41,475 nucleotides of DNA from Perkinsus chesapeaki ATCC PRA-425 (lineage: Eukaryota; Protista; Perkinsozoa), in assembly GCA_013115145.1 (NCBI GenBank), contig JAAPAO010000300.1:1-41475 (forward strand). Reading direction: 5' to 3'. Below are positions 875 through 37,218 of the stretch, piece by piece. Under the pieces are notes generated by a model. The model was not told the origin of the DNA. It was given only the letters and a program-made list of their open reading frames with translations, and did no database searches. The position numbers and the translations under genes were made by a program. Within the stretch, counting starts at the first letter, position 1; every line of letters begins with the position of its first letter.

Positions 875-933
875 TGTTAACCATCAGGGAACTCAAAAAA
901 CCAGAGTGAGGCAAGAATCTGGGAAATATAATC
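875..933 (+). repeat. 59-bp direct repeat, copy A (copy B at 1288-1346)
   Basis: TGTTAACCATCAGGGAACTCAAAAAACCAGAGTGAGGCAAGAATCTGGGAAATATAATC aligns ungapped to 1288-1346 with 5 mismatches. Confidence 0.95.
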
Positions 934-948
934 AGATTAGACTAATCT
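927..948. other. 22-bp inverted-triplication scar (1 mismatch), inferred target TCTAATCT
   Basis: t ataatc a gattag a ctaatc t; the paralogous repeat carries single TCTAATCT at 1340-1347. Confidence 0.85.
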
Positions 949-1287
949 TAGCTTAGTACAAAAATAGCAGTACTAGCGTCGAGATGAGCTTAAGGTTCCA
1001 TTGTTGTGCAACTCACACAACATCCCCCTTCCCCCAGAGACGAACAACACAGGGAATTAAAAAAACATACATCAACAGCAATGTAGATCTCGTCATCGTC
1101 ATATTGGATCAACATACGAATCACATATCGCAAAATCAAGTTGTTCTTGGTGTTGAAACTTGTCAGTCTTCTTATTAAACTCGTCAGTCGGCACGTCGTA
1201 AAATGTTAGGAGTACCAGCAACACCAAAACCAGATGCAATTTGCTAAGCGATAGGAATAGGGATAGATGCAGCAGGGTTCTCCACCA

Positions 1288-1346
1288 TGTTAACAATTAG
1301 GGAACTCAAGAAACCAGAGTGAGGCAAGAATCTGGGAAGTCTAATC
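1288..1346 (+). repeat. 59-bp direct repeat, copy B
   Basis: Matches 875-933 with 5 mismatches; ends in the unexpanded 8-mer TCTAATCT (1340-1347). Confidence 0.95.
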
Positions 1347-1983
1347 TCGCGGGCCGCGGGAGACTGCCGCGGGGCGTGCATGGTTGGTACACGTAAACCA
1401 GATGCATTTGATATGTGATCTCATGGTTAAGGCTGGTACACACTCAGTGTACGGATCGAATGTGTACTACACTCTCGACAATCTTCTAGTTGGCTCCCTA
1501 TTGAGAGCACTTTGTAGACTCTCCTCGCCGGCTTCGTCGGCGCAACTCTCGCCAGACCCTCGTCTGCTCACAAGTTCACCGATTGAGAATGCTTGAAGTC
1601 AGATTCGAACCAGCAACCGCCCGCATTCCGTAAACTTTACGGGTAGTTGTGTGGTAGAAAAGGCGGGGCTTCCTGGGCTAGGAACGGTTTCCTTCCTTGC
1701 ATGGTAAAATATTTTTGAAGTTGATACGTAGAACTTGTATGTGTCAACTTCGAAAAAAGCTTTTAATACTTTGAGGCTTAACATGAATAATGTCTCTCGA
1801 AGTGCACGCGCAAATGACGAGCACCGAATGAGTACTTCAACGAATAAGCAAATAGAGTGCTTTTCCAAGGTATGTGACGCACACTGTGCAGTCAACACAG
1901 TGTGGACGCTGGAAACCTCACGTTACTGTCGTTGGAACGCAATGGTCTAGTACAGTGGAAACTCAGAGGGTTAGGAAAGTCAC

Positions 1984-2005: not shown

Positions 2006-3223
2006 TGTAGACACTGTCTACTACTAGTAGATTAGTCTAGTACACTACTGGACAAGATTTTATGAACCTATATGGAACGGTGACGCTATCTACTAGGTTT
2101 GCGGGCTCTGCGGCTAATGGCAGAGTTACCGAGAAGATCTAACAATGCCTCCATAGGACCAACGGCATGGGCGCAGTGCTGGCCATTGGTTACCTAGGGT
2201 ATTGCACATGTCGATCGGAAAATGCTTAATAGGCATTGCCTAACTCAAAGAGGTCCTAAACCACTAACGACTGACCGCCAGTCGGCGATGGCATCTACTA
2301 CTCATTCAGAGTCTGAGCTTGTTCCGTCGTCAGAGGCAAAAAAGAGATCGCATCCCAGCGTATCAGTATCCTTTGCCAAAGGTGACTGTCTAACAGCCGC
2401 ATCAGGTCCCACCAATGCCTGGCGACCTGGGATCTGAGGTCTAATGAAATCTCTAGGACCAGCGAGCTCGCCGTGAGGGCGATGGGCAAGAACCCTATCT
2501 ATTACCTTAGAATGAACGAATTTCTTGTTCTTAGACTTTGGGTCATTCATTTTTCTTCTAAACCCTGTGAACTCCTTGGGCATTCGATCAAGACTACCCA
2601 CAAGGAAATGGTCAACATTAGACGAGGAAATTCCTAAGGAATTCCAACTGATGAAGGCTTCTTTAGAGAGACCAGAATGCCCAAGACGCCTTTTGGGGCT
2701 ATGCTTGTTCAGCAATGAACACTGGGATTCTACAACGCTTTCACAATGGCTTTTCATTGACACGCAGCCAATGATATATATGCAGTCTTCACATCCCGAA
2801 TAGATTTTGGCATTGGTGTGAACCTCAGCCCATACGGCTTCCATATCAATCTTAGGCATCCCATTGCCTGGTGGCATAGGTAAAAACTTCTCGCGTAAGC
2901 GATGGCGGAGCTCCAGATAATGTAACAGCAAGCCGTCAATATCAGTAGAAGTCTCCAAGACGGGCTTGAAACCACATACAAACTCTATGATTATCTCCGT
3001 ACACATTAATAATGCGTACAAAATTTGTGGGTATTGTGCGCGTAAATCGATAAACTAATATACTTGTTATGCTTAGCAAGATATGCTATAGGATTTCCCG
3101 CCAGAAGTCCTGTTCCGGAGTTGATTACTGTATCCTGAGGCTGAAAACCCGTAACGTTAATCACAAAGAGTCTGATCTAGTCAAACTAGGTGGAGGCAGC
3201 GTCCCCATCACGCACGCATGGAC

Positions 3224-3245
3224 ATCGTGGTCCACGATTCGTGGA
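3224..3245. other. Perfect 22-bp inverted-triplication scar, inferred target ATCGTGGA
   Basis: a tcgtgg t ccacga t tcgtgg a. Confidence 0.95.
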
Positions 3246-3569
3246 GCGTCACGGGGAAAATCGAGTTGTTGATTGCGGTAGTGTCGACCACACAGTCTTG
3301 AGATATTTTTGTTTGACTCATCCTCTCCCACCCGCAGCTAGAGAATACTGGCGTGGTCCACATCTTGATTACATTTCTTAGCTGTTAATCACTAATAAGT
3401 AGTTGCAAATCCGTGCAGCCGTGGCGCCGCGATGATCGCGGCTACTATGGCTGGCTTGGAGATCATAGACTCAGCTAAATAAGTGAGGCAGGCTGGCTCG
3501 AGCCTTCCTTGTTTTTCTTGAACTTCCTTGCCCACACATGTGGGTGGGCACCCCCATTTTCTACCACAC

Positions 3570-3591
3570 CCGTAAAGTTTACGGCGTAAAG
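3570..3591. other. 22-bp scar (last base mismatched), inferred target CCGTAAAC
   Basis: c cgtaaa g tttacg g cgtaaa g. Confidence 0.65.
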
Positions 3592-4145
3592 CAGTCTTAC
3601 TGCTAGGCCAAACTGAGGATTTAGTGTGGCGTACGTTACCAATATCCCTCACGAGGAAAGTTCCAATCGCCCCGCTGGACACACAACATGCCCATTACAT
3701 GAGCTCCGGAAACCCGGCCTCTAGGTTAACTTCGAAGAGCTCTCCTGGCTGAACTGATGACTATTGGACTTTCCAAGAAATATACATGATATCATCATAT
3801 CCGATATAATGAAATGCACGTGTAGGTGTAGGCTCCCCGGCAAAGACGCCGATTAAGCAGAACATTTTTGTTATGAAAGCGAGTGCTTCACTAACCCCTA
3901 TCGTCCCCTGTAATTGCCATCATGGGTACGAACCAATCGAAGCCAACCCATGTGTTCTTTCTCTGTCTCTGGGATGCGAAATGATCCCAGAACAACTGGG
4001 TGAGTCGGTGATTCCTGCTTATTAGGTTCCAATATCAGTGCACAGCCGAGCTCAGTTAACTAAGCTATCAATCGCCGATTCCGAGACGCCGAAAGAGCTT
4101 AGCTGAACTTCCAGTTCTTCAGTCAAGATTAAACATAGCATCACT

Positions 4146-4657
4146 ATGCAGTTCATCAGGGACATTCTGCTCATCACAGCTTTCGGCTGCTCTATCGCCG
4201 TCGAGCTTACGGTAACTAGTGTGTCTGAAGATGTCAATGTTCGAGGTGATTGTTATGAAAAACCAACCGGAAGATGTGATTCCGAGGGCAAAGGCTGCTC
4301 TTGCACTCCGCCAAACCACCTGTTTGGTACTAAGGTGAGATTTACTTCTGAGGGATGACCTGCAGTCAATATTGTTACTCTCTTAGAGACACTCGACTGG
4401 GAAGTATGCGTATTTTGTATGCGCGGCGAAGTGCGAAAATGCAGGCGATTGTCCTAAGCCTATCCGTGGTGGTGCTGTGTGTATCGAGAAATCCTGCGCC
4501 TTGGGTTGTTTGTCCGACAGTGTAAGCCATTACTCTTTTGTAGAATGGAAATGTTATTGTAAATCTTTAGGACTGCTATCAAGGTGGGGTATGTGTTATT
4601 ACATCGACTAGTAGTGCCTGTACGTTTCCTATAAATGAGAATCAGGGCGGATCATAA
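4146..4657 (+). CDS. Small secreted cysteine-rich protein, 136 aa, 3 exons (4146-4334, 4387-4521, 4571-4657)
   Basis: Signal-peptide-like MQFIRDILLITAFGCSIA; two phase-0 GT-AG introns (52 and 49 nt) join in frame to TAA; 13 Cys in the predicted mature part (CAAKCENAGDCP...CIEKSCALGCLSDSDCYQGGVC). Confidence 0.8.
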
Positions 4658-4914
4658 CGCTTCAATTCTTCCAGCTGCAGAAGCACGTTATGATAGTAAT
4701 GTTATCACAAAGTCGACCACAACATTCAGTACCAACTTAAGAATGTTGGTCATTGATCGACATATGGAAAGAGTCAATACTGCATTGGCTCGTATGCTTT
4801 GATTGTCTATGACGCGATAATCTTTAGAGAATATAACATCCTGGATATGTTGTGTTGTAATGATTTTCAACTTTGACGATAAAACATGAACTAGTCATGT
4901 GTTGATCATTCCTC

Positions 4915-4947
4915 GAAGATTGCTAGAAGATTGCTAGAAGATTGCTA
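4915..4947 (+). repeat. Tandem repeat 3 x GAAGATTGCTA
   Basis: Three exact 11-bp units. Confidence 0.95.
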
Positions 4948-5279
4948 GACTTGGACAATACATTCTCCTCGAGCTGTTTTCTGATATTTGTCTTGCATTC
5001 TCCCGCATGATGCAACACCGCCGCGGGGTGACGTGTTGGAAAGTGCTCGTGTACCGGTTGAATTCGACACTCACAAATACCATTGAGCCTTGGTGCTATT
5101 AAAACACATGAGCAACTTTGAACCACGAATAAAAGCTTGGAAACTATGTATACGCTTCGACATCTTCCAAAGTCGTGTAGAACAACGGAAGTGAGCAAGA
5201 GATGTCCAGTGACTGAAGGTGTCGCTGGGATAACAAAAGCAATGAGTCGCGTTACCATCCAAAGATGGCCGCTTATCAT
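4923..5279 (-). pseudogene. LTR-retrotransposon integrase (rve) core relic
   Basis: TRLIAFVIPATPS...VLHDFG.....PRLNGICE resembles the integrase core (TRF..A.P...FG.P..I.SD.G...P..NG..ER); catalytic residues look degraded. Confidence 0.4.
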
Positions 5280-5324
5280 ATGGGTTCACAAGCTCGGACC
5301 TGAATATTGACTGTCCCACTAATA

Positions 5325-6314
5325 CTACGGAATGAGCTTGGCGACGGCCTGATTTGCATCAACGCGGCCTAGCTTGAGCGTTTTCTCGCCGAAGCGATCT
5401 TTAACACCAGGCTTGGCGGTATCTTTGAGAATTTTCTTTACATCACCGGGGCTTAGATCAGGAGCCAAGCTGTAAAGCATGGCAGCTACACCAGCTATCA
5501 TAGAGGACGCTGCTGATGTACCAGATACCTTAGTGTAGGGCGTATCGACCGAAGTTGTCCATATATCGCTGCCTGGTGCAGCAATATCCACATAAGTACC
5601 AATATTGCTCAGAGAATTCAGCTGCATTTTCGTCTGCTCTGTCGCGGCAACGCAGACCAGCCCATCCAGGTACATTGTTAAGGCACATGGATAGCGTTTA
5701 TCTTTAGTGATATCTTTCCTCTCATTGCCAGCTGTGACCACAACAAAGATACCAGCGTTTGTCGCTTCTCTTATCTTTGCATTCAGCGGTTTATTTAGTG
5801 TGGACGAGGAAGTAGCCATCAGGATAATTTTCACCTTTTTCTCGTCCTTATGTTGAATGACATAGTCCACAGAGTCTAGCAGAGACTGGCTTGTTGCAGA
5901 AGTGCCACAATAGATTGGCATCACCTTCACAAGATCTGCCACTCCTGCGATACCGATTCCATTATTAATAACGGCTCCGAGGATTCCCGCCACCTCGGTA
6001 CCATGACTGCCTCGGTCATGTGTATCAGTGTTATGGTCAATAACATTGTAGCCCTCGATGTAGTTACCAGCCAAGTCGGGATGATCAGACTTCATCCCGG
6101 TGTCTATCACAGCAATGCCAATTGTATGCCTTGGAACCTTGGTGGTCAACAATCTGCTCCAGGCATCTTTTATGCCGACAGCCTTCAGGTAAGCCTTCTG
6201 CTTCGCATACATTGGGTCATTTGGATATCCATTGGCAGTATGAGTGACATTGTTATGCATTGTGATTGCAGATATCGGGAGTATGCCGAGGAGCATGACA
6301 CAAAGTTGCCGCAT
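5325..6314 (-). CDS. Secreted subtilisin-like serine protease (S8), 329 aa, intronless
   Basis: Signal peptide; catalytic motifs VIDTG, HGTEVAG, GTSAAS; oxyanion AGN; thermitase-like PNDP start and VDIAAPG. Confidence 0.95.
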   Translation of the reverse strand: MRQLCVMLLGILPISAITMHNNVTHTANGYPNDPMYAKQKAYLKAVGIKDAWSRLLTTKVPRHTIGIAVIDTGMKSDHPDLAGNYIEGYNVIDHNTDTHDRGSHGTEVAGILGAVINNGIGIAGVADLVKVMPIYCGTSATSQSLLDSVDYVIQHKDEKKVKIILMATSSSTLNKPLNAKIREATNAGIFVVVTAGNERKDITKDKRYPCALTMYLDGLVCVAATEQTKMQLNSLSNIGTYVDIAAPGSDIWTTSVDTPYTKVSGTSAASSMIAGVAAMLYSLAPDLSPGDVKKILKDTAKPGVKDRFGEKTLKLGRVDANQAVAKLIP

Positions 6315-6881
6315 GATACGGGTGGAGTAAATGGACTAAAGCCTTGAGGGAACACACTAAATAGAAACCTTTATACTGTAGCAAACGTATCTCTCTTCCG
6401 GCCTAACTCTGCCTCATACCTGCGCCCGCGCACGCACGCACGGAAAGCGAACAGGCTGTTCGCTGAGCTGAGCTGAGCTCGGACTGAATGATGCAGGTAA
6501 TATCAAGAAGATATTATCAACCATGTCACGAGCTGGACATCCCCTTCAAGTACGGGTGGGAGTAGGGTGGGTCAAAAAAGATGACAATCAAAGCTCGGAT
6601 GCATTACCGACACTAACTCTCACCATGAGGTTCTTATAAAGAAGCGCGACAGCTCGCCGATGCGCATGCGTGCGTGACCGAGAGGCGGACTAGTCTAGAT
6701 TTCACTTCGAAACACTTCGTGTGCCGAATATTAAAACAGCGTCGAGGTGCAATAGGCTGTTGTCAATAGCTCAAGGCCTCGGAATTCCCGAGTCGGAAAC
6801 GAGTGATGAATCATAGGTGAAGCTTACTTGCCATCAACGGCACGGATAAAATATTTTTTCGATATATTCTCTTACGACTCG

Positions 6882-6903
6882 CACAGTAGTACTGCGACAG
6901 TAC
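6882..6903. other. 22-bp scar (1 mismatch), inferred target CACAGTAC
   Basis: c acagta g tactgc g acagta c. Confidence 0.85.
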
Positions 6904-7221
6904 GTGTGCACACTCAGCTAATCCACACGGGAAGCGCCACGCCCGTGACCGAAAAGAATTGTGGGCGGAGCCGTGATCGGGGCGTCGATTGATACTATCG
7001 GTAGACGATGGCCGACTCTGGTAACAAAATCCCGAAGGCTTTATACGAAGTAGTGCTTAACGGGCAGGCAATACAGCTTCGAGTTGCAACAGCTTGAGAC
7101 CTCGGAGACAAGTAATGACGCGTAGGTGAAGCTAACTTCTCATCAAAAGCACGGACAAAAGAATCTGGCGAATCTTCTCTTTTATCTAACTCACCGTACG
7201 CGCGGGCACTTAGCTCTTCCG

Positions 7222-7243
7222 CACAAGATTCTTGTGACAAGAT
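7222..7243. other. 22-bp scar (last base mismatched), core CACAAGA
   Basis: c acaaga t tcttgt g acaaga t. Confidence 0.8.
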
Positions 7244-7866
7244 GCGCCGCGGCCGTGACCGACTACAACAGCAGGGGATATAAAGACTCGTAGCTACCTG
7301 TGGCCGAACGGAATCGATTTACATATAATATAGCCGGCACACAGCTAAAAACGGGTACACGTAGAAGGAAGACAGAAGCTTCCTACAACAACGGGTCACC
7401 TCACGATAATAACAATGCACTGTCAGAGTTGGGGAAGTAGGGAGTAGCACCACCTGGGAGTGGTGTAACATCCGGATTCGGGGAGTGAACAATGAACATG
7501 GACGGACAGATGATGTATGCACAATGCATGGTGTACTGGACATACCTTCAGCTATTCTACAAAAAACACGGCATAGTAGAGAGTGGGCAAGAACCAATGA
7601 CTTCTCCCAGGGTACTTGTAACACCGCGTGAAAACGGCGTAAACTTTCCCCGAAAGCTTCGGCAGCTTCCCGACGGGAAGTATGTGAAATATTCGTGAAG
7701 ATCACTTTTATTAAAGCTTGATTTACGTCCATTTTGCAACCTCGTGTAGCTATATGCCAGGTGATTATATTGGCATTTACTTGGGCGTATTATGCCTGTG
7801 ATTGCGCCGCTATCATTGTGGTGTACTGGTCCAGGCTGTCTGGAGTCAGACACCGCGGACTGAGCC

Positions 7867-7888
7867 CAGGACTCAGTCCAGTGGACTG
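7867..7888. other. 22-bp scar (1 mismatch), inferred target CTGGACTG
   Basis: c aggact c agtcca g tggact g. Confidence 0.8.
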
Positions 7889-8125
7889 CCTTGTTTGAGG
7901 CGGTCTCACGCGCTGCGCGTGTTGTTGCTCGGGACTCCAAAGCAACCAGCGGGAACCTGCGTCGGGGACAACGGCAGAATTCGATTGAACGCGATGACGA
8001 CATCGTACTCCAGGGTGACGTTTACTTGATTATCTTTGATGATCCAGCCTTGTGTACGAGGTAGTTATTTCGAGGGGCGAATTCGTTAGCCGACTCAGTG
8101 CCGTTCCCACGTGGAATACGATTGT

Positions 8126-8170
8126 TGTTTGTTCGACAAGACTTGTCGAACAAACACTTGTCGGACAAGT
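8126..8170. other. Extended double-palindrome scar (15-1-15 plus 7-1-7), inferred target CGACAAGT
   Basis: tgtttgttcgacaag a cttgtcgaacaaaca, overlapping by 1 nt with acttgtc g gacaagt. Confidence 0.9.
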
Positions 8171-8213
8171 AATTATTGCTGTTATTTATGATACGACCAA
8201 GTAGCCAACGGGA

Positions 8214-8235
8214 CAATGTTCAACATTGAATGTTG
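8214..8235. other. Perfect 22-bp inverted-triplication scar, inferred target CAATGTTG
   Basis: c aatgtt c aacatt g aatgtt g. Confidence 0.95.
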
Positions 8236-8471
8236 AAGTTTATGGGCCTTCCCCTGTGGAAGTTCCACGGCGAAAGCTTTGGAGTCTCCCTGTAGCAAGC
8301 AAGCCAGGGACCCGTTAACCAAACTGGATTCATTGTGGTTGCTCCTTGTGAAACTCTGCTAGCTTACAGGAGAGCATAATGATCAGGGTTACACAACGCA
8401 ATAGATATCATAATTAAAGATGCAGCGAGCGAGTGTGGAATCATAACAACACAACATGAACTCATTAATGG

Positions 8472-9347
8472 TTACTCAACTTTTGGTTGCTCTATTGACT
8501 GCTCTTGCTTGACCTCGCCGATCGATGAGCCTTGCACTCGTTTCACACTGTGGGGCATCCGGTTCAGGCCGGCCTCGGATTTGATTCCAGCCGCGTGGAC
8601 TTCAGACTTCACATTATCATCATCTTCCGAATATCCAGTGAAACCATACCGCCGCCTTCGGATGGCATTCCTCATCTCACGCGATACGGTATGCTCTACC
8701 CAACCACCTTGGGCGCCCAGTTGTGAGACGTCGACAGTCACGCCCTCTTCTGTTGCCGATCCCACTGCTGAACTTGTAGTCACTTCGGCGGTGAATGCAA
8801 CGCGCTCAGGCGGATTATTGCATAAAGCTTCAGAATCTGCAGGTCCTTCATCACTCCTCTTACTATAGGTATTATCTTCACCAGACTGTCGCGACGAGGT
8901 ACCATCCGCAATCTCGTTAGATATAGAATCTAAGAGCTGCTTGTAGCGCGCTCGTTTTAAACGACCACTTCGACGTACGCCTCCCGAGCTAGTGGAGCGA
9001 CTCAAGTCATCCAGCATCTGTGCTGCTTCACGTTCTCGGATTCTAGCACTTCTTCTAACTCCTGAGCTTCTCAGGAGGCCATAGGAATCAATATGAGACT
9101 GAGGCCTAGGCCATGGCACTGGTGTCTTAAGAAAAGACTCGCAGGAGCTCGGTGAATCCGACGGGGTTTCACGACTAGGTAATGGCACAGGTACGATGAG
9201 CGCGTGCTCTGAAGAGCTCGAGCACGAACTAACTAAACCAGCAGAGTGTGCTGGGGCGTCTGGCTGGGGAACCGGAAGTACTTCGGTTTGGAGTTGGACT
9301 ATCACAGTGAAGGAAACGTCACAATGGGGGCATTTAATAGTTAACAT
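8472..9347 (-). CDS. Hypothetical disordered protein, 291 aa, N-terminal CPHC and two RRSxR repeats
   Basis: Uninterrupted ATG-started ORF; Ser/Pro/Arg-rich; internal repeat SSGVRRSARI...LDDLS / SSGGVRRSGRL...LDSIS. Confidence 0.6.
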   Translation of the reverse strand: MLTIKCPHCDVSFTVIVQLQTEVLPVPQPDAPAHSAGLVSSCSSSSEHALIVPVPLPSRETPSDSPSSCESFLKTPVPWPRPQSHIDSYGLLRSSGVRRSARIREREAAQMLDDLSRSTSSGGVRRSGRLKRARYKQLLDSISNEIADGTSSRQSGEDNTYSKRSDEGPADSEALCNNPPERVAFTAEVTTSSAVGSATEEGVTVDVSQLGAQGGWVEHTVSREMRNAIRRRRYGFTGYSEDDDNVKSEVHAAGIKSEAGLNRMPHSVKRVQGSSIGEVKQEQSIEQPKVE

Positions 9348-9547: not shown

Positions 9548-9569
9548 AGTGGTGCCACCACTGTGGTGA
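9548..9569. other. 22-bp scar (last base mismatched), inferred target AGTGGTGG
   Basis: a gtggtg c caccac t gtggtg a. Confidence 0.8.
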
Positions 9570-9731: not shown

Positions 9732-11399
9732 TTATTTCGACACAACAAAGGTATCTTGTACTTCAATAGATCCAAGGGTATCATTGTATCCCCAATAAGT
9801 GAAATTCAGCAACGTAGAGTTGATGACGTCAAGCTCGACATAGCCGTAGGTCTCGAGGACCACCTTGAGCCACGGAAGGTCTGACCTCGAACAGCTGCCC
9901 TCCATGAAACGCATCGACCCTGACAAGACGTGGACCGTTCCATTTATGGCACTTGTGCGTTCGTAGTGATGAACATGACCGGTTGCATAGACGTCGACGT
10001 CATACTTCATCAACAACGGGCCAACATCCGATGCCAAGTGAGCTGCTATCTCTCCATCCGGCTGTCCGGCCGTCTGGCAACTGTAGTACATTGGCCTATG
10101 ACCAATAACAATGATCCAAGGTGTTTTACTTCTATCAACCTCAGAGAGATCTTTATCTAACCATTCATTCTGATCACTACCATTAAGATAATTATGCTCA
10201 GTAGATAACATAACATAATGGACAAGACCAAAGTTAAATGAGAACCAATAATCTTGGTTAATACCATCACCTCGATGATAACGATGAGAGAATGGCACTC
10301 CACATTCACCACCAGAATCGAGACTATTATAGTTACCCCACTCTGGGTACCAACCCTTAGGATTGCCAGTAGAACAATATTCATGATTGCCGACACTGGC
10401 CGCAAATGGAGTGCGCATGGCAAAGCCATCCTCCATCTCGGCACCGAACTGATCCCAAACGATACCATAACCACCAGAGTAAGCAACATCACCGTATAAA
10501 ATAGCAAGTCTGATCCTGTCGTTGTCTCGGACATGATCGAGTGGATGGCTGGCGTATACAGGGGGGAACTCCATAGTCCCAAAGCCTCGTGCACCTCCGC
10601 TGATGCTGCTTCCTGTTACACCGAGATCACCAAATAGAGCCACGCTATGTCTGGCTGCGTCACCAGGAAGGATTCTGGGATGAGGCCGAAATTGGCGGGA
10701 TTCGCTCCCATCGTTACGAATTTGCAAACGAGAACCGAAGGGGAAGTTGGGCAGAGTAACCGAATGGAAGAAACCTGGGTTTCTGAAGCCGATATTTTCA
10801 GCAAGGAAAAAGCACATATCGGAGCCTTTGTATGTACGAGGGTTAGTGGTTTCCTTATGAGATATCCAATTTGTACCATCAACAGTTTGGTATAAAACTT
10901 CACCAGGTTGACTTGATGCACTAACCCAATTGACTTGAAGTTGATCTTCTCCAACAACTGTAATATGAGCTTGATTTGGTTCATCATCACCTTGGGCAAA
11001 TGTTAAATGGGTTGAGCATAACTCATTACCATCAGATTTAACATACGTTACTATATAACCACCACCACGAGGATTCACAGGACGAATCTCATACTCATTG
11101 TCAGTATTATTAAGTGATGCTACTAATATCCTGAAGGCACTTGCCAGAAAAGGTCCAGAAGTATCGTTAAGTCGGAACTCGATAGTATCTCCATCGTTAA
11201 CGGGCTGATGCCAAGTGACCTTAACAGGATCATAACTGTGTTGCAGCTGATTAGTCGACAGGCTTATGCAGCTAGTGCCGGCAGTTGGCTTCGCTGTTGT
11301 GGGTTCAACACTAGGGTTATTGTTATTATTGGAACAACCTATGATACCGAAGTATATCACCAGGAGAGATACGACCAGGAGTACAGCGATCGGGGGCAT
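9732..11399 (-). CDS. Purple acid phosphatase 1 (metallophosphoesterase), intronless
   Basis: All five PAP metal motifs: GDLG, GDVAY, GNHE, VIGH, GHVH; hydrophobic N-terminus. First ATG is at 11399 (the track start 11414 is TTG). Confidence 0.95.
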   Translation of the reverse strand: MPPIAVLLVVSLLVIYFGIIGCSNNNNNPSVEPTTAKPTAGTSCISLSTNQLQHSYDPVKVTWHQPVNDGDTIEFRLNDTSGPFLASAFRILVASLNNTDNEYEIRPVNPRGGGYIVTYVKSDGNELCSTHLTFAQGDDEPNQAHITVVGEDQLQVNWVSASSQPGEVLYQTVDGTNWISHKETTNPRTYKGSDMCFFLAENIGFRNPGFFHSVTLPNFPFGSRLQIRNDGSESRQFRPHPRILPGDAARHSVALFGDLGVTGSSISGGARGFGTMEFPPVYASHPLDHVRDNDRIRLAILYGDVAYSGGYGIVWDQFGAEMEDGFAMRTPFAASVGNHEYCSTGNPKGWYPEWGNYNSLDSGGECGVPFSHRYHRGDGINQDYWFSFNFGLVHYVMLSTEHNYLNGSDQNEWLDKDLSEVDRSKTPWIIVIGHRPMYYSCQTAGQPDGEIAAHLASDVGPLLMKYDVDVYATGHVHHYERTSAINGTVHVLSGSMRFMEGSCSRSDLPWLKVVLETYGYVELDVINSTLLNFTYWGYNDTLGSIEVQDTFVVSK

Positions 11400-24216: not shown

Positions 24217-24684
24217 TAGAGGATGTCGCCTAAGCAAGCGTAAGGACAACTACGAAAGCAGAAGTCTATAGAAGTTATCACGTGATAGGAGCTTCATCAT
24301 GAAACAAGCGACCATTTCTTCTGAAGACTCGTGCCCGGATGAGATGGGCCTTGACTGATATTCTGAGGTTAATCTGGCAAACTCTGCCGGGACTCTAACT
24401 CGAAAAAAGATTGTTCGGCGGGGGTGGCTCCTACTAGCTGAAAACAGAGTCCGTCTTACGGACTCCGTCGTGGCGCGGCGCCTCACGAACATAAAAGCGC
24501 GCTTCACACTCACCTGATGCAGGCAGTTTCACTGGCTGCTATAATAGACTGTTCATCAAGTTATCTTTGAAATAATGTAGCCCACTTCTAGTCACTCGGT
24601 TACTATAATACTTATACTGTTTAGTCGTTCCAATGATTCACCAATAGAAAACGAAAAGAAAGAAACCAGATTCGCCAATGAGAG

Positions 24685-24712: not shown

Positions 24713-25732
24713 GGGAGGAGTTCCCATAATCCTGGGCCATAGATGATGTACAGGGTACAGAGGAGTATCGCTCAGCCCCAGGAACGTAGATATAGCCTGT
24801 AGCAAGTTGGATTACTGCTAAAGACTTTATAATATCATCAAGTGATTACTGCAACACTCATTGAGTTGGATTGGACGGCGCAACAGTGTCAGTCTCATGG
24901 AGATAGGCTCCATGACAGCACACTGCGACAAAGAAAAGCCGCCGATTGGCCTATTAGAGCTAACCAATAAGGAATCTCGAATTAAGAGTTGTGTCGGATG
25001 CTTTTTACTGATTCCGACTTTGAATTTCCGTGTTGGTGTGGGCAATATAACGAGCCATAATTTCTGTTAGATCAGACTTCGGTATCGAGGCATGATTGGC
25101 GAATCAATGCTTTATTTCTGTGCCAGTCGTGCACGACTTCCTGGCGTAGTTGCCACTGAGGTTGGAATATAGCGTGAAGTGACCTGGTCAATCACAAATT
25201 TGTTCTGAATAGGGTAACTGTACGGTACCGCTACCAGAAATTTATGTCGCATATTCACGAGCCTATTTGGTGAAGAAAAATGAAACTTCTAAGCTCTTAG
25301 TATTTACAGAAGTGCGCTACACATTCGCGGCAGTCTCGAAAGTGGCTCAATTACAATTCAGATAACTTGAAGGGCAAACCTCGCAGACCTTTGTGGACTT
25401 CGGTTCTCCGGTGTGTTCTCTGTGTATACCGACAAGCATCAGTGAACTATGGATCGGAATTAGTAGTCTATCGTGGTCCATGGAGATCGCCAGTATAAGC
25501 CGCTATGTGATTCAGTCTCCAAGCAGGCTCCTTGAAGAAGCCCTTTGGTGGAGAGTCAACGTGCGTATCAGAGTATACCGCGACAGTGAACGAGAGTTAT
25601 ACCTCAATCGGATATCGAGGTCTGTCTGATACTGAGGTATTCCATCTCGTGCCGAATTGGCAGTGCTGCATCAGCATATGAGACAGTATGTGAGAGATAC
25701 AGTTAAACTACAAGCTTTGGGAATGGCAGATT

Positions 25733-26753: not shown

Positions 26754-27485
26754 TTACGATTTACCCCTGAGAGAGCCAAGGAAAATGAGTAGACCAGGAT
26801 GGACGTAGTGGACATTATAGCCATCTTTTTTGCCGGCCACGTCAATAGAGACATTAGCCTCATAGTGCCACGTAATCAGGTCTTCTGAGCTGATCATAAC
26901 TGTTAGTTCGGCCATTGACTCAAGATAAGAAGTATGTGCGGCAGTTCTACCACGTAAGACTAGAGAACTGGTCTTACGGTTATTCTTGTAAACTACTGCA
27001 TGAGCACTTACACTCTCATTCTTGGCGGTTACATCGCCCACATAGGGAACGGTTACAAGAGAAGTTACGGAGGCAGGAAAATAGAGCTCCCACCCGTCCT
27101 TGAAAGCGCTGCCTCCTTTACAGTATAGTGGAATATGAAGAGTTATCTTGAGCTTAATATTGCCGATCAAGAGTGATTCATAGGATACATCACGGTTCGC
27201 CCAAACACCAATACCATTCGGATGACCTTCAGAATCTAACCCGGCAGAGAGTTCTATCGAGCTGAACGTGTGCGCGCCAGTGCCATTCGATAGCAATCTT
27301 AAACCTCCATTGACTTGACGATTGTCTCTCAAGATGTACCAACAATACGGACCAGATACGTTTTTATGTAGACACATATTGGGTTCACTGGCAACCTCGG
27401 GGATGGCCGGAAATCTAGAGTCTCGTAGGCCAAACTTTGCTATTATAAGCAGAAGAGTGATGCAGTTGGATACCGAAGATAACAT
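26754..27485 (-). CDS. Uncharacterised secreted protein family X, copy 3 (243 aa)
   Basis: Intact ATG-to-stop ORF; signal peptide; highly similar to copy 4. Confidence 0.85.
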   Translation of the reverse strand: MLSSVSNCITLLLIIAKFGLRDSRFPAIPEVASEPNMCLHKNVSGPYCWYILRDNRQVNGGLRLLSNGTGAHTFSSIELSAGLDSEGHPNGIGVWANRDVSYESLLIGNIKLKITLHIPLYCKGGSAFKDGWELYFPASVTSLVTVPYVGDVTAKNESVSAHAVVYKNNRKTSSLVLRGRTAAHTSYLESMAELTVMISSEDLITWHYEANVSIDVAGKKDGYNVHYVHPGLLIFLGSLRGKS

Positions 27486-27956
27486 TACAAGGTTATATGC
27501 GGTCTATTAAGCTAAGAAGGTGGCAAAGAGATTAAAGAGATATGAAAGTTACTCTCCACGAGAACAAAGCTTTATAAGGTCTGATCGCCAGCTTCACAGC
27601 GAAGCCTCGATCATGAAACGAACAAACCAATTCTCTCGTAGCATTGCTTCATATGAGATAGACTTCGTTTCCCTACGCTTAGTTGGAACCTTGGCCCACG
27701 AAACACCGAGGTAATGTCTTTGCTGTATTTCGAAGATCTAATGTTCGTCGGAGCTTTGACAAAATCGATCATGGCGCGGCGCGGTACCAACACGAAGGCG
27801 CCCTCTCTAGTTGGCTTTAGTGTCAGTATCAGATGATCTATGGTTCCTTTTAAACGGTGAATTGGAGCCAGAGCATAGTAATGCTCGTATTGCTGATCTT
27901 GTGAAATGCTCGACTGAGAACAAATGAAACCTGTCAAGCCTTTTCGCCTATGATGC

Positions 27957-28994: not shown

Positions 28995-29726
28995 TTAATA
29001 TCTGAGAGAGCCGCTAAAAATGACTAAATCTGGGTGCTTGTAGTGGACATTATAGCCATCTCTTCTGCCGGCTACATCGATCAAGACATGAGCATCATAA
29101 TGCCACGTAATCAGGTCTTCCGAGCTGATCATAACTGTTAGTTCAACCATCGACTCAAGATAAGAAATATGTGCGGCAGTTCTACCACGTAAGACTAGAA
29201 AACTGCTCTCACTATTATTCTGGAACACTACTGCATGAGCACTTACACTCTCGTTCTTGGCGGTAACACTGTCAATATGGGGAACCGTCACAAAAGAAGT
29301 TACGGAGGCCGGAAAATAGAGCTCCCACCCGTCCTTGAAAGCGCTGCCTCCTTTACAGTATAGTGGAATATGAAGAGTTATCTTGAGCTTGATATCGCCG
29401 ATCAAGAGTGATTCATAGGTTGCATCACCGATAGCCCAAACACCAATATTAATCGAATGACCTTCAGCATCTAACCCGGCAGAGAGTTCTATCGAGCTGT
29501 ACGTGTGCGCGCCAGTGCCATTCGATAGCAATCTTACACCACCATTAACTTGACGATTATTTTTCAAGATGTACCAACAGTACGGGCCAGTCACTTCTCT
29601 GTGTAGGCACCTACTGGGCTCACTGGCAACCTCGGGGATGATTGGAAAGTCTCGGGTAGAATCCCGTGGGCCAAATTCAGATATTATAAGCAGAAGAGTG
29701 ATACAGGTGGATACCGAGGATAACAT
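28995..29726 (-). CDS. Uncharacterised secreted protein family X, copy 4 (243 aa)
   Basis: Intact ORF; signal peptide; family motifs conserved. Confidence 0.85.
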   Translation of the reverse strand: MLSSVSTCITLLLIISEFGPRDSTRDFPIIPEVASEPSRCLHREVTGPYCWYILKNNRQVNGGVRLLSNGTGAHTYSSIELSAGLDAEGHSINIGVWAIGDATYESLLIGDIKLKITLHIPLYCKGGSAFKDGWELYFPASVTSFVTVPHIDSVTAKNESVSAHAVVFQNNSESSFLVLRGRTAAHISYLESMVELTVMISSEDLITWHYDAHVLIDVAGRRDGYNVHYKHPDLVIFSGSLRY

Positions 29727-30014: not shown

Positions 30015-30036
30015 TCTTTAAGTTAAAGACTTTAAC
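30015..30036. other. Perfect 22-bp inverted-triplication scar, inferred target TCTTTAAC
   Basis: t ctttaa g ttaaag a ctttaa c; the paralogous unit has a single 8-mer TTTTAAAC at 27848-27855. Confidence 0.95.
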
Positions 30037-30179: not shown

Positions 30180-32524
30180 GAGAGTCTCCCCAGAATCCTC
30201 ATTGTTAGACGATGCCCAGGATATAGAGGCTCACGGGCTACATGCTACCCCTTGTTAAGCAGCCCAACAAACTTAGGTAAAGTACGGAGCAAGTAAGAGT
30301 ATTGCTCACTACTTAAGGGCACATCAATGGTGGTTAGATAACCTTTATTGCAATACTAATTGTGTGGAATGGGGCAGCAATAAAAGATTGTGATAGTATC
30401 GTTTCAGAGCATTTGTATCCCGTAGAACGGGAGAGTATAATGGAATCCCATGCGTGCAGTGCAATGCACACTGCACATTGTACTGCGCCGTTTCGAGGGT
30501 TTCTCTCCCTTCCTCGCGAAACGCACCTACATGCGGAACACTTCACTGCAATGCGTGCAGAGATTGCGGGATATCGCTGCTCAACGCAACCGGACGCTGC
30601 TACGTAAGACGAAACAGAGAAACACCAACCCCGCATTAATGGCGGTATAGAAAGTCAAAGTTTATAAATATTCGTCAGGCACACACAGCTCTATGAGGTC
30701 TCCCGATAATAGTAGGCATTTTGCATGTTAATGCTCGTGTCGTATATCTCGCGCAATGCACTTCACATTTCACGCTGTGCGCGCAACGACAGCAGTAGCG
30801 ATTTGCAGTGCAAACTTTGGACTCGTGGAAATGTGCGAGGTGCAGTGAAAGCATCGCACTTCAAGCAAATCAGGCTTTCCAATCCAATGCGGGTGCATTT
30901 CCAATAATATCGGTATACTCTCAGTGCTGCTATATCATACGGCCTATATGAGTATCGCTGAGTTATGGGACAGTAATAGCATAATCGGTGCCACGATGAT
31001 CGTGGCATGGTCCACGATCAAGGTACCATTCTGCACAGCATGTTCAAGCTTAATCGGACTTGATATATCGTCTCCTGGGTCACTCAAGTTGAGTGTAATT
31101 GCGAGTTCCGCAAAAAGGTGCCAAACCCCTAGATACGGCCCATGTCACATGGAGGAGTAGGCTGGCGAGAAGCCGCTATTCTTCCTTCCGAGAACGCCCA
31201 ATAAGAAATCCCCCTAGTAGGGGCCCCTTCACGGCAAAGCCCCGTCCGGACTAATTGCTCGACACGGGCGATCACTGTTCCCTTCCAGTGATCACGATGA
31301 AGTTGTCCGCCGTCACCGCCAGCCCGTCGTACGGCACGAGGATATTGACGCATACGAAAGCGGAAGCGGAGACTAGAACGAGGACATATACGAGAAAGGA
31401 AACAGAAAATGAAACGAGCCTTAATTCCGAATCGCGACGAATCCAACTCAGCGACGACACAAGGCTTGAACGAAGAGGACAGGTCATTCACTATATGTGG
31501 TACCACCACAGTGGTAGCTGTGCAACCTTCAAGGATGAACCTTGAGATCTAGCGATTAGAAGTAGTAACACTAAATATCTGAGGACGGTTTACGTAGATG
31601 GATACCCTCTGGAACTCCTTTCTACAACCTGAGCGCCCCAAGCCCAGACGTGGGCTAGTATAAGGGCATTAATCCACGTTGACCAGGCAATAACGCGTAA
31701 ACACGAATTGACAACAAAAAGGCACATCAGTTACACTCCTCGAAGCCTATCGTCATCGTATCGATCCTGTAGTAAAAAACTGTCAACAAGCTTTTCATAT
31801 TCTTTCCTCAAACTTGTTTCTCTTGTTCGCTCCAAATGCTTGTAGGCAATGGAGCATCGGCTCTCGTCGTCGAAAATGACGAGCAAAGTCGAAGTTGGTG
31901 ACATCTTCACCCTTAACTGACCTAAAGTGCACAGCAAAATCTTCATAGAGCGGCAAAGATATCTTACAAGGTTGATCTCGGACGCATGATACTTCTGTTA
32001 CCGCCATCGATCCCACATAGCGTACAATGCCGTATCCAGGGCATGTTCGTTCAGGAGCGGTGAGCAGGAAAACTGTGTCCCAAAGAATCAGGTACAGAGA
32101 CTCTGCGGACTTCATCTGACTCTGACTCGGCACTGACGCATCTTCCAACTTCACGCATTTGCAACTCAGTCGGTCGGACTTGCCTGAAGCACCATCTTAG
32201 TGAACCGCCCAACTATTGCAACCCGAATGCCAGTAGTTGACGAAGCACTTCAGAGAAATCAAGTAAGTTACCAAACGAACTTCTACCTACCTAAATCGAG
32301 AGCGCTGCCTTCGGGCCATCCACTAGTTTCAGCTCCAGCTGCACAGCCGGTAGTCTCCGACTTGACACCAGGTAGTAGTTGTTCTCTCAACAACTTAACA
32401 TAATCAATAGCATATTGAACAGGAGCGCTCGTGGGGTTCGGCGGAGGTAGCAGGGTTGGTCGACCAGGAGGGATGCCGGCCAGTGTCGAAACTAACATTG
32501 AGGAACCTGACAGGGATAACATTG

Positions 32525-32546
32525 CTCCTCAGTGAGGAGTCCTCAC
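32525..32546. other. Perfect 22-bp inverted-triplication scar, inferred target CTCCTCAC
   Basis: c tcctca g tgagga g tcctca c. Confidence 0.95.
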
Positions 32547-33148: not shown

Positions 33149-33268
33149 CACCTTTTCCCGTGCAAGCTTAAATCAAAGGTGTGTCAAAGATGAATACTTA
33201 TTGTCATTTTTGGGGAAGACATTGACGTTGTTGCTTGGACATTTCTCAAACTTGCACGGGAAAAGGTG
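33149..33268. mobile_element. Putative MITE, 120 bp, 18-bp perfect TIRs, possible TA target duplication (Tc1/mariner-like)
   Basis: CACCTTTTCCCGTGCAAG ... CTTGCACGGGAAAAGGTG; flanks are CA (left) and TA (right). Confidence 0.6.
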
Positions 33269-33300
33269 TAGATAAAGACTATTGCCTACTAGACAAAGCA

Positions 33301-36300
33301 TCACAAAGATGAAACACTCGATAACACTCCAGCTGCATTTGTTAACTTCTTACTCGATTTGCTGGCGCTTGTCGTCTGTTTCAGCTCACTATCGGCCTTC
33401 TCGATGGCATCTTTATACAGCATTCCTCTAGGGGCGTCAAAAACATGTTTCCTCGCCTCGCTTGCCACTGCATGAAAGCACTCCCATGCTCGATCGCTCG
33501 GACCCTTCTCAGCGTGGCCGATCACAGCTTTGTAAAGCGCCAGCAGTAGTTCGATAGTCAAAAGATTCCATTGCTTTTCGTACCCACTTTTCACCAAGTC
33601 CAAGCACGATTCCGCCAGCTCTGGTTTCGGAAATTTCCTGCCTCCGGAACTCACCTTTGGCAAATCATTCGGGAAGCTCTCAAGTAACCTCGCAGCATCC
33701 AGAACCGAAATCGACTCGTCCGCCTCGTCTGGATTCGGCAGACTTGGCGGCGCCGGTGAAAACTCAGCGAGTTTCGTCCGTATCTCCGGCGCGTTCAAGT
33801 AGTGCGAAATTTGCACCATCACAAACGTGGCCAGAATTTTGTTGGGAGCCTCTTGCCGAGGCGCGAGGATCGGTTCCAAAGCATACATGGACATCTTGTC
33901 AACCAAAAGATTCAAAAGAGGTTGTATCTGAAATGCATCTTCCAAAAGCGCTACTCCCACTCCCATGGCACCAAAAAGGCACGTATTTCACACTGCCCGA
34001 ATTTGCCGAAATGTGCGAGCTTGTTTTTTTTCAACCACCCCAGATATCGTGCCCAGTTCACGAAAATGAGTTCAAAATCTTGTAAACGAAGGGCCATGCT
34101 GCAGGGGGCCTGGAATATGGCCAGCACAACGGAAACGTACGAAATACCTCTACAGATACGTACTGAGCCCGGATAAGATACTCATCCGACAACTACCAAG
34201 CATTGCTCATGTCTGCGGAGAATCACTAAATCGCCTAAGGAACCCTCCTGCTTCAAGTCCCTTCACGATCAACAAACAATGAATTCCTCAGACGCTGGAG
34301 GAGACCTTATGAACCAATGGCAATTATACAACTCCCCGAACTCACATTAGGATTATCAACTGTAAAGATATCAGAGATGTAGAGCAGAACATCAACTATA
34401 TCATCCACAGCCGCCTCAGCAACTCTCCTCGATGTGCTGAGTTTGCCAACCTTTTGCCATTGTTCCCGAAGGCCTTGGCTTAATAGAGAGAAATAGCCGC
34501 CACTGTGAGTTACCTGGCAACAGTTCCTAGACGAGCGGCAAACCCTCTACGCAGTGCTTCATATAGAACATATATGCATTGCTTTAGGCTTTATTGGGGA
34601 TCGTCCGCGATATGTGAACACCTTACAACTTCGAAAAATACAAGTCAAATCTCCAATTTGCGTCCATGTGCTTGTGAAATGCACCCAAACGCCTGACTTC
34701 CACGGGTGAATCTACATGGATGTGGAGGCTCATGCTAAGAACTACTCGGTACAAAGTAACCCATAACCCGACAGAAAGGTGAGGCATTCGGTAAACCAAA
34801 GGATTCCCAATGAAGCTTACAAGGAATAATAGGATGAGCGCGAGAAATAGTGACAATTTTCTGGAAAAGTGACAATTTTCTGGAAAAGTGACAATTTTCT
34901 GGAAAAGTGACAATTTTCTGGAAAAGTGACAATTTTCTGGNNNNNNNNNNNNNNNNNNNNNNNNNNNNNNNNNNNNNNNNNNNNNNNNNNNNNNNNNNNN
35001 NNNNNNNNNNNNNNNNNNNNNNNNNNNNNNNNNNNNNNNNAAAAGTGACAATTTTCTGCAAAATAGTGACAATTTTCTGGGAAATAGTGACAATTTTCTG
35101 GGAAATAGTGACAATTTTCTGGAAAATAGTGACAATTTTCTGGGAAATAGTGACAATTTTCTGGGAAAGTGACAATTTTCTGGGAAAGTGACAATTTTCT
35201 GGAAAAGTCACAATTTTCTGCAAAATAGTGACAATTTTCTGGAAAAGTGACAATTTTCTGGAAAATAGTGACAATTTTCTGGGAATAGTGCCAGTTTCTA
35301 CTTGGTACACCGACAGTAAGTATTATGCAATAATGTTAATAATTTTCTCGATCGTCAAGAATCCACAACTTTCGAATTTTCTAATTGTCTGATCTCGACT
35401 TACCAAGAAATCCATACAAGATCGATCTGCCACTTGATAAATCGCCAAGGTGAGTGTTCTGACAGAAGTCCTCACCATGGCGTCCGAGCTGTTATAGAGT
35501 CGTATAGGGACCGTGTAGAGGACCTAATAGGAGTAATAGCACATTCTGTGGAAACCCAATTTAGTGGAAGCTGAAGGATACTCGGCGCGATATCAGAAAT
35601 TAACAAAAGCAGGCTGAAGACGTACAAATCAGAGCAACAGAATAGCGAAAATGCGAAAGTGACAAACCAGGAAGCGAACAGTAAGTACCTCAACCGGCGT
35701 CTTTATGGCAAAGAGCGTCATAAAATTTAGTGAGCACTTTCGAAAATCGAAGTCGGCAACGCCCGCAAATTTTTTATATTAATAAACACAGTTATTTCAT
35801 TCAGCTGTCATTCGGTATTGAACATCAATATCATATATTGGACACACCGGAGGCATAAGTCTTAAGTGGCCATATTTACAATATGATAGTCTTCAAGCCA
35901 CCAAGTTGTTTTCGCTTTGGACCATCACAATCGAACACCCTGTTAATTAATAAGCATATTAAGCTCCTACTCTAGTAGGGCACACTGGGGTGTTCAGAGA
36001 GACTTACGAATTGATCATTATGGAAGAACAGCGTTAGCATCTCTTGGTCGAGTCTAAGAGCCAAACTCTTGACAAAAGTAATGTAGTAGGACAATAGCTC
36101 CTCATCAGAGGACCAATCACATGGTGCACCTAATAAAGACTTAATTCAGCAGCCTAAAATATAAAGTCTATTTTCCGAAATGACCTCCAGCCGGAGCTCA
36201 AGAAAGTTTCATTGCCTTATATTGCGGAGGATATGATTCACTCTGTGCTATAGAAGAGGTCAACTATTTAACACCTCCTTTTTACTGACAATATTCTTCA

Positions 36301-37218
36301 AGCCGATCAAAGTCATCACTGAACGGATGTCCGAGCTATCACTCCCGAAGGAAGGTCCAGCTGTCGGTCATCATTCGCAGTTCCTCAGGAATCTCTTACA
36401 GAAAAAATCTCGCTTGTAACCAACAGATAGCCCCAGAGAAGTTTGTTTTTGATATATGAAAAAGATATGTACCGAAGCCACAGTTTTGCATATTTCACAT
36501 TGTTATTCACATTCATCATTTTGTCTTTCACATAGTTCGGCTCTGAAACTTCGCGAGTAACCTTACTGTGTCGAGAAAACCATCTACTTTAAGTACCCAA
36601 TGGTTAATGCTCCTTGGTTGCCACTCAATCCCAATACAAGGCACGAATTGATTAGGATTTGACACGCAGTGTATATCGCAACAAACCCATTTCGGCTCAC
36701 TTATAAGGTTATTAATATGATCATTGCTGAATACATATATAAGCGAGGTCCGAGTCTTGAGATTCTGGGTAAGTAAACTCATCGTTTGCAATAATTGCAC
36801 CTTCACTGTCACCGACACCGACGCCATACTTATCACTTTAACCTGGGACCAATGAAAGTTTAGTTATTAACTAATAATTAACTAATAGTTAATTCAAAAT
36901 AAATTGTTAAAGTAATAATTATTAAATTTTTGGGATAAATTATTCATTTCCAAAACCGCTACAGTGTCTCCAATTCGATGGAGATGTTAAGAACCCCGAT
37001 ACCCGGATTTTCACCAGCGCACCAACCGCACTTACAAAGCTGCTCAACATTTCCTTCTCACAAAAGTAATCAAACAGCTCTTGATGATCGTTCTGTTCTC
37101 CCCACAGTAATATCTCAGATATTTCCCGCAGATCTTCGACAAGACCCTCGCAAGAACTGCCACTCAAAGCTTCTGGCTCTTTTAAGCGTGCTGTTATTCT
37201 TTTGTATATCTCCGCCAT
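33301..37218 (-). CDS. CLEC16A: CLEC16A/GOP-1/TT9-like FPL-domain protein, multi-exon
   Basis: Phase-consistent GT-AG exons 37218-37036, 36842-36701, 36129-36008, 35523-35404, 34670-34627, 34588-34514, 34478-34346 give LREISEILLWGEQND...FDYFCEK, VQLLQTMSLL..NL, DEELLSYYITFVKSLALRL, MVRTSVRTLTL, YFSK, DVLLYISDIF, all FPL/CLEC16A hallmarks. Exons between 34345 and about 33950 are unresolved; the last exon ends at 33301. Confidence 0.88.
34844..35299 (+). repeat. Minisatellite of 19-22-bp units (AAA(T)AGTGACAATTTTCTGG) in CLEC16A intron 4, spanning an assembly gap
   Basis: Head-to-tail units with no unique spacers; 100 N at 34941-35040, so true length is unknown. Confidence 0.97.
36860..36894. 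other. Extended double-palindrome scar (7-1-7 plus 9-1-9), inferred target TTAGTTAA, in CLEC16A intron 1
   Basis: ttagtta t taactaa, t, then aattaacta a tagttaatt; AT-rich context lowers significance. Confidence 0.6.

Follow-up and report, generated by a model that had tools for sequence, protein, structure and literature searches.

Stereotyped 22-bp scars in the non-coding DNA of Perkinsus chesapeaki that fit excision of a hAT-type transposon

The non-coding DNA of the shellfish parasite Perkinsus chesapeaki carries many 22-bp scars built to a single rule, in which an 8-base site is turned into forward, reverse and forward copies, and these are probably the excision footprints of cut-and-paste DNA transposons of the hAT type (probability about 0.78). 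The stretch of DNA analysed, referred to here as the window, is the 41,475-nt contig JAAPAO010000300.1 (positions 1 to 41,475) of strain ATCC PRA-425 (assembly GCA_013115145.1). The pattern can be written W[1-7]+revcomp(W)+W[2-8], where W is any 8-mer, and is equivalent to cX, comp(b), rc(X), comp(c), Xb with W=cXb and X of 6 nt, as it was first described in a sequence-only reading. It occurs 6 times perfectly, 16 times with at most 1 mismatch and 30 times with at most 2, compared with 0, 0.1 and 0.3 in dinucleotide-preserving shuffles. When unit lengths of 4-13 and offsets of 0-3 were scanned, a single peak was seen at an 8-mer unit with a 1-nt offset, the apparent 10-mer/offset-3 hits being the same sites shifted by one. 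Our literature searches found no description of these scars.

The six perfect scars lie at 1984-2005 (W=GTGTAATC), 3224-3245 (W=ATCGTGGA), 8214-8235 (W=CAATGTTG), 15889-15910 (W=ATCCTCAC, upstream of the phosphatase gene 14054-15718), 30015-30036 (W=TCTTTAAC) and 32525-32546 (W=CTCCTCAC), all as given in the sequence-only reading. Scars with 1 mismatch are found at 927-948 (W=TCTAATCT), 3570-3591, 7222-7243 (inside the roughly 10x repeat 6415-7414), 7867-7888, 9548-9569 (intergenic), 15753-15774 (35 nt upstream of the start codon at 15718), 19074-19095 and 19102-19123 (both in the presumed intron of gene 17149-20629) and 22646-22667, with a weak, AT-rich, scar-like sequence with 1 mismatch at 36860-36881. 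Those with 2 mismatches are at 2222-2243, 6778-6799 (W=CTCGGAAA), 6882-6903, 7659-7680, 8248-8269, 19559-19580 (in the presumed intron), 25520-25541, 30801-30822, 30991-31012, 31074-31095, 31496-31517 and 31523-31544, together with two scar-like sequences, one at 20014-20035 which is AT-rich and weak, and one at 3420-3441, where a second allele in runs X2-X4 (see below) lacks 8 nt, so that this may be a single palindrome plus a partial duplication. Of the ten sites that the sequence-only reading had listed with one mismatch, nine have 1 and 6882 has 2, and of its two-mismatch sites 7659 and 30801 have 2 whereas 24449 has 3. It had missed site 36860 and eleven sites with at most 2 mismatches (2222, 3420, 6778, 8248, 19559, 20014, 25520, 30991, 31074, 31496 and 31523). 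Collapsing every scar with at most 1 mismatch to its 8-mer revealed no new, nested scar, and although three pairs lie within 40 nt of each other, this clustering is not significant (P=0.1).

No scar overlaps an ORF of 150 aa or more, and as these ORFs cover 30% of the window the probability of this is about 2e-5. Contigs of run X1 (2020) and of runs X2-X4 (2022, from another sample and study) cover 3215-6505 and 7268-9214 with no differences, with the scar at 3224 identical in the contig of X1 and those at 3570 and 8214 identical in X1-X4, and the scars there are real DNA rather than an assembly artefact. The assembly gap at 34941-35040 lies inside a 19-21-nt minisatellite (34844-35297), but no scar is within 800 nt of it and it does not affect the finding. 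A look-up of other haplotypes of this contig returned only the window itself. The scars also occur in P. marinus and P. olseni, in independent assemblies and runs, but are absent from the Clytia and Phytophthora control loci. It is very unlikely that the 22-mers are a selected structural motif, such as a hairpin-forming signal, or an assembly or sequencing artefact. They do lie in UTRs, introns and intergenic DNA and can form hairpins, but their sequences are unrelated, copies decay by mutation, perfect copies are polymorphic presence/absence alleles, and they are found in Sanger-era and later assemblies. No Rfam family matches the window, and no tRNA was found.

Comparison with unscarred copies indicates that each scar is a +14-bp change of one 8-bp site. 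At nine of nine comparable sites a single 8-mer is present where the other copy has the 22-mer, six of these being allelic in P. olseni and three paralogous in the window. All six perfect P. olseni scars are exact 14-bp gaps against another isolate or haplotype, and the other copy holds the predicted 8-mer exactly (TTAACGAC, GTGACAGG, ACCCCGAC and ATCAGCAG) or with one change (AGCACAAC and CGCTTACT). Within the window, the paralog of scar 927 keeps exactly TCTAATCT at 1340-1347, the paralogous copy of scar 30015 holds a single 8-mer, TTTTAAAC, at 27848-27855 (the copies are about 86% identical), and the tandem unit neighbouring scar 6778 has a single CTCGGAGA at 7101-7108. All polymorphic scars are perfect, whereas the one scar shared by two P. 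olseni haplotypes has 2 mismatches. That the scar is the derived state is inferred from parsimony and from the perfection of the scars, as a 14-bp slippage deletion between the direct copies could also turn a scar back into an 8-mer. The process appears to be both ancient, since mutated copies exist, and recent, since perfect copies are polymorphic.

The reconstructed 8-mers follow nTnnnnAn. Across 50 scars, T at position 2 and A at position 7 are each present at 48% (p=2.7e-6), while the other positions are flat. This is the published target preference of hAT elements, with Hermes preferring 5'-nTnnnnAn-3' (PMC10368747) and hobo NTNNNNAN (PMC3276498). Only palindromes with a single central base are enriched (arm 7: 29 against 2.6), and those with spacers of 0, 2 and 4 are not. 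The palindromes are centred on the complement of the base next to the presumed element, as is described for Ac/Ds footprints (PMC5873905). This centring, the sharp peak at 6 nt for X, the absence from coding sequence and the empty sites agree with what the sequence-only reading had predicted.

A transposon-independent origin, in which a polymerase switches to the opposite strand and back during replication or break repair and so triplicates a short stretch, seems improbable. Template switches may well create forward-inverted-forward arrangements, no element was seen at any of the comparable sites, and chains of odd palindromes which we could not decode exist at 2007-2031 and 20816-20860. However, a polymerase slip gives no reason for one fixed length of 8 with a 1-nt offset, nor for a T2/A7 preference at the ends of the unit, and other lengths are not enriched.

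The pathway we infer begins with an element that inserts and duplicates the 8-bp target W=cXb. On excision, the transposase nicks one nucleotide into the flank and closes each flank into a hairpin, the apex of which is the complement of the base that lay next to the element. Host nucleases then open both hairpins several nucleotides from the apex, such that the left end reads ...cX+rc(W)... and the right end ...rc(W)+Xb... Both flanks carry a copy of W, so the two unfolded tails are complementary over the inverted copy of W, and whenever the tail lengths sum to more than 8 nt the in-register joint gives the same product, cX, rc(W), Xb. The two opened hairpins share the whole 8-nt inverted duplication, rather than only the 6-nt core through which the sequence-only reading had proposed that they anneal. 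A joint through the direct copies would restore the original 8-mer and leave no trace, and the 22-mer is therefore the one visible product.

Interestingly, one extended scar of 45 bp at 8126-8170 (W=CGACAAGT), identical in contigs of X1-X4, is reproduced base for base by two opened flank hairpins. Its left palindromic tract is 16 nt and runs 8 nt beyond the target-site duplication (TSD) into the complement of the left flank, its right tract is 7-8 nt, and the two are joined end to end with a 1-nt overlap. In contrast, shorter footprints of the form cX + i P-nucleotides + j P-nucleotides + Xb, for all i+j<8, are not enriched. As such short forms are typical of hAT excision in plants, yeast and Candida, the repair must differ from every studied host, although that step is inferred. 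Loss of classical end joining is not supported as the reason for the uniform product, as Ku70, Ku80 and Lig4 are listed as present in P. marinus (PMC6635534 Table S1).

The element itself has not been identified. No TSD-flanked element was seen among the 9 comparable sites, no TSD-plus-TIR element with an exact 8- or 9-bp duplication was found in about 150 kb of Perkinsus loci, and no transposase domain was found among 110 unannotated ORFs of about 160 kb of Perkinsus loci or in selected ORFs, which represent only a small part of these genomes. The inverted repeats of the window have no matching flanks. The 8-nt deletion allele at 3418 and two replaced segments in the P. olseni loci L005 (8822-9580) and L011 (3183-3634) could not be read as insertions of an element. 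It remains possible, though unlikely, that the footprints come from another hairpin-forming element with 8-bp duplications (Mutator-like, Merlin or an undescribed superfamily) or from a domesticated hAT-like nuclease, with the same repair logic but a different enzyme. The MULE Muta1 also makes flank hairpins (PMC5499845), and a P. olseni foldback element (L005:8921-9566) has 8- or 9-bp direct flanks, although without an empty allele for comparison. Against this, the usual MULE duplication is 9-11 bp and there were no hits with at most 1 mismatch at 9-13-mers, while the nTnnnnAn logo and the complement-of-adjacent-base centre are the published hAT signatures. P elements are likely to leave remnants of their termini at the donor site, whereas these scars contain no constant sequence, and the core positions 3-6 of the logo are flat, unlike the P target GTCCGGAC (PMC3276498).

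A more speculative and doubtful possibility is that Perkinsus has a very active hAT or hAT-derived cutting system whose flank hairpins are opened far from the apex, at least about 5 nt and up to 16 nt or more, by a route unlike the Artemis-type opening of studied hosts although Ku and Lig4 are present. The +14-bp scars would then be a major class of mutation of their own, which would keep seeding hairpin-forming palindromes in UTRs and introns, some of which may have been taken into use. Alternatively, a domesticated enzyme may make the scars with no long-lived element, which would explain why no one finds the transposon.

If the hAT reading holds, every scar is a dated record of one insertion and excision, and past transposition could be counted and timed across a genome without relying on resident copies alone. 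The uniform product would also report how this protist opens and joins DNA hairpins in vivo, a step otherwise studied mainly in V(D)J recombination and in a few model hosts. As the scars are polymorphic between P. olseni isolates, they would be easy, unambiguous markers for strain typing of an economically important shellfish parasite. P. marinus can be transfected (PMC7200600, PMC8062965), which makes the model directly testable.

The closest known systems are the excision footprints of Ac/Ds, Tam3, Ascot-1 and Hermes under the hairpin model, with which the scars share the 8-bp duplication, the palindromic additions centred on the complement of the base next to the element (PMC5873905) and the target preference (PMC10368747, PMC3276498); long palindrome arms, up to 20 nt, are also known from yeast. 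In plants, yeast and Candida, however, the footprints are many and mostly short, with 28 kinds in 128 Candida events (PMC5873905), whereas here one 22-bp product dominates and is seen as a genome-wide fossil record, at about 1 per kb of non-coding DNA, rather than at a watched donor site. In V(D)J coding joints, RAG hairpins opened off-centre likewise give palindromic additions (P nucleotides), and the extended scar at 8126-8170 keeps both tracts unannealed, like a coding joint with long P tracts. RAG hairpins appear, however, to have no 1-nt offset and no target duplication, so the two ends would share no complementary inverted copy and give no stereotyped product. Short template-switch mutations (quasi-palindrome or fold-back events) also produce a forward-inverted-forward arrangement, but have no fixed length, offset rule or target preference, all three of which are present here. 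In the repair of mPing excision sites guided by TSD-derived microhomology (PMC4561436), the duplicated target also provides the homology that steers repair to one outcome, but there the direct copies pair and restore the site precisely, whereas in the pathway inferred here the inverted copies created by hairpin opening pair and add 14 bp.

The window, contig JAAPAO010000300.1 of the Perkinsus chesapeaki assembly GCA_013115145.1, carries three tandem purple acid phosphatase genes, a subtilase and a DEAD-box helicase fragment, mostly on the minus strand, and one of its proteins matches FOL47_005459 of P. chesapeaki. The three phosphatase paralogs are only about 53-61% identical as proteins, yet they share tracts of 230-360 nt at 94-98% DNA identity (10086-10319, 11931-12164 and 14406-14638, and also 10756-11113 and 15072-15429), which suggests patchy gene conversion. 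Three further paralogous ORFs of 243-249 aa on the minus strand (23500-24249, 26754-27485 and 28995-29726) have no Pfam match, and the last two are 86% identical in DNA, together with their flanks.

The rule underlying the scars can be written W[1-7] + revcomp(W) + W[2-8] for an 8-mer W=cXb, which gives 22 nt and 14 constrained positions. All six copies described as perfect in the sequence-only reading are perfect, and its mismatch classes are nearly correct, although site 6882, given as having one mismatch, has 2, and site 24449, given as having two, has 3. A scan of the window found 6 perfect copies, 16 with at most 1 mismatch and 30 with at most 2, whereas dinucleotide-preserving shuffles gave 0, 0.1 and 0.3, and the observation is confirmed. 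Varying the unit from 4 to 13 nt and the offset from 0 to 3 nt left a single peak at 8 nt with offset 1, the hits at a 10-mer with offset 3 being the same sites read one base earlier. Shorter products of the same kind, with fewer palindromic bases between the two direct copies, are not enriched.

Palindromes with exactly one central base are strongly enriched, with a peak at 7-nt arms (29 against 2.6 expected), while palindromes with 0, 2 or 4 central bases are at chance. Chains of overlapping palindromes with one central base, in which one short word recurs three or four times in alternating orientation, were also seen at 2007-2031 and 20816-20860, and at 3460-3610 of the P. olseni locus L011. 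These do not fit the simple 22-bp rule, and may be repeated events at one site. A roughly 40-nt inverted homology between 1628-1667 and 3551-3591 includes the palindrome CCGTAAA-n-TTTACGG and 19 nt of flank, with one copy being a full scar (3570) and the other a lone palindrome (1635).

Contigs of an independent sequencing run from 2020 (X1) and of three runs from 2022 belonging to another sample and study (X2-X4) cover 3215-6505 and 7268-9214 without a single difference, showing that the scars there are real DNA. Those stretches include the scars at 3224, 3570, 7659, 7867, 8214 and 8248 and an extended scar at 8126-8170. Runs X2-X4 also carry a second allele across 3322-3507, with 9 substitutions and 8 nt missing at 3418, next to the 2-mismatch scar-like site at 3420, while run X1 shows only the allele of the window. 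In all four runs contig depth across 6415-7414 is about 10 times higher than in the flanks; this stretch contains roughly 310-bp tandem units and three scars, and many diverged copies exist elsewhere in the genome. The assembly gap at 34941-35040 is more than 800 nt from any scar, and most likely sits inside a minisatellite with a 19-21-nt unit (GAAAAGTGACAATTTTCTG) which lies on both sides of it (34844-35297).

None of the 30 scars overlaps an ORF of 150 aa or more, although such ORFs cover 30% of the window (P about 2e-5). Against the gene calls of the record, four scars fall in gene 17149-20629 (414 aa in 3.5 kb), where they sit between the long ORFs and so presumably in an intron. The others are intergenic or just upstream of start codons.

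Three scars in the window have a paralogous copy. Scar 927 pairs with 1340-1347, which reads TCTAATCT; this is exactly the predicted W, so the one mismatch of the scar is a later mutation. A 59-nt repeat (875-933 and 1288-1346, 92% identical) ends exactly at the 8-mer or scar, and beyond it the two copies are unrelated. Scar 30015 pairs with 27848-27855, which has 8 nt where the scar has 22, with homology continuing on both sides. Scar 6778 pairs with CTCGGAGA at 7101-7108 in the next tandem unit.

We also retrieved the orthologous phosphatase loci of several isolates of P. olseni (including those denoted L002, L004, L005, L006 and L011), in which all six perfect scars are exact 14-bp gaps against another isolate or haplotype. 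The empty site holds the predicted W for L006:5133 (TTAACGAC), L011:1954 (GTGACAGG), L011:2272 (ACCCCGAC) and L002:8425 (ATCAGCAG). For L006:13720 it reads AGCACAAC where ATCACAAC is predicted, and for L006:245 it reads CGCTTACT, in two other loci, where CGCTTGCT is predicted. Each haplotype has private scars. The haplotypes differ by 6-9%, yet all six polymorphic scars are perfect, whereas the one scar shared by two haplotypes (L004:4664 = L005:3825) has 2 mismatches. The polymorphic scars are therefore inferred to be young gains of 14 bp at a single 8-mer, rather than old structures lost in the other copy, although reversion by slippage between the direct copies remains possible.

The scars are not confined to these two species. 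In P. marinus (GCA_000006405.1), a 14-kb locus (L001, GG685043.1) holds 3 perfect scars and a 21-kb locus (L007) holds 2 perfect scars and 7 with at most 1 mismatch, while in P. olseni perfect scars occur in several loci. Control loci from Clytia (L008, 23 kb) and Phytophthora ramorum (L009, 22 kb) contain none with at most 1 mismatch. In all, 18 perfect scars were counted in about 161 kb of Perkinsus DNA, where about 6e-4 are expected by chance.

Three independent features point to a hAT-type transposase. Firstly, the unit is 8 bp, the hAT target duplication. Secondly, the palindromes are centred on one base that is the complement of the base that would have lain next to the element, which is the published rule for Ac/Ds footprints and is explained by a flank hairpin; arms of up to 20 nt are reported in yeast (PMC5873905). 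Thirdly, the 8-mers reconstructed from 50 scars of the three species have T at position 2 and A at position 7 in 48% of cases each (p=2.7e-6), with no preference elsewhere. Hermes is stated to prefer 5'-nTnnnnAn-3' (PMC10368747), and the earlier literature motif for hobo is NTNNNNAN (PMC3276498). A Mutator-like or other hairpin-forming element is the main rival, but is disfavoured by this logo and by the absence of any 9-mer peak. A polymerase template switch would explain neither the fixed length nor the T2/A7 preference.

Further evidence comes from the 45-bp structure at 8126-8170. It equals, base for base, the left flank TGTTTGTT, then CGACAAG, then A, then the reverse complement of those 15 bases, joined with a 1-nt overlap to ACTTGTC-G-GACAAGT. 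In other words, both opened hairpins of a site W=CGACAAGT are kept without annealing. The left tract runs 8 nt beyond the duplication into the complement of the flank; only a fold-back of the flank explains this, and it shows opening at least 16 nt from the apex.

The supposed element itself was not observed. All nine comparable sites show only the empty and scar states, and the intermediate, an element between two copies of the 8-mer, was never seen among them. The loci scanned for a target duplication plus terminal inverted repeats, about 150 kb, contain no element with an exact 8- or 9-bp duplication and good terminal inverted repeats. The one foldback element with 8- or 9-bp direct flanks (CGCGGAAT(G)), at L005:8921-9566 in P. 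olseni (JABANN010000307.1), is 646 bp long with roughly 75-nt inverted termini and internal 29-nt tandem repeats, but no empty allele is available to compare; the other isolate has unrelated sequence at this place. No transposase domain was found among 110 unannotated ORFs or in selected ORFs. In P. marinus, ORFs with reverse transcriptase and integrase domains at L001:4778-7989 mark an LTR-type retrotransposon between two phosphatase genes. The hAT assignment is supported, but therefore rests on the signature of the enzyme and not on the enzyme.

How a single product arises is inferred. After excision, the left end would unfold to ...cX + rc(W)... and the right end to ...rc(W) + Xb..., so that the two 3' tails are complementary over the inverted copy of W, up to 8 nt rather than the 6 nt proposed in the sequence-only reading. 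If the tails are p and q nt long, they overlap by p+q-8 nt, and for every p+q above 8 the in-register joint is the same 22-mer. Pairing through the direct copies would restore the single 8-mer and be invisible. The lack of short footprints then implies that the hairpins are usually opened at least 4-5 nt from the apex. Loss of classical end joining is not supported as the reason, as Ku70, Ku80, Lig4, Mre11, Rad50 and XPF are all listed as present in P. marinus (PMC6635534, Table S1).

In full-text searches that did not extend to most subscription journals, we found no description of a single dominant 22-bp product, of its density (about 0.7 per kb overall and about 1 per kb outside long ORFs), or of its use as a genome-wide, partly polymorphic fossil record in a protist. 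The parts of the mechanism, in contrast, are textbook, namely flank hairpins, palindromic additions and homology from the target duplication.
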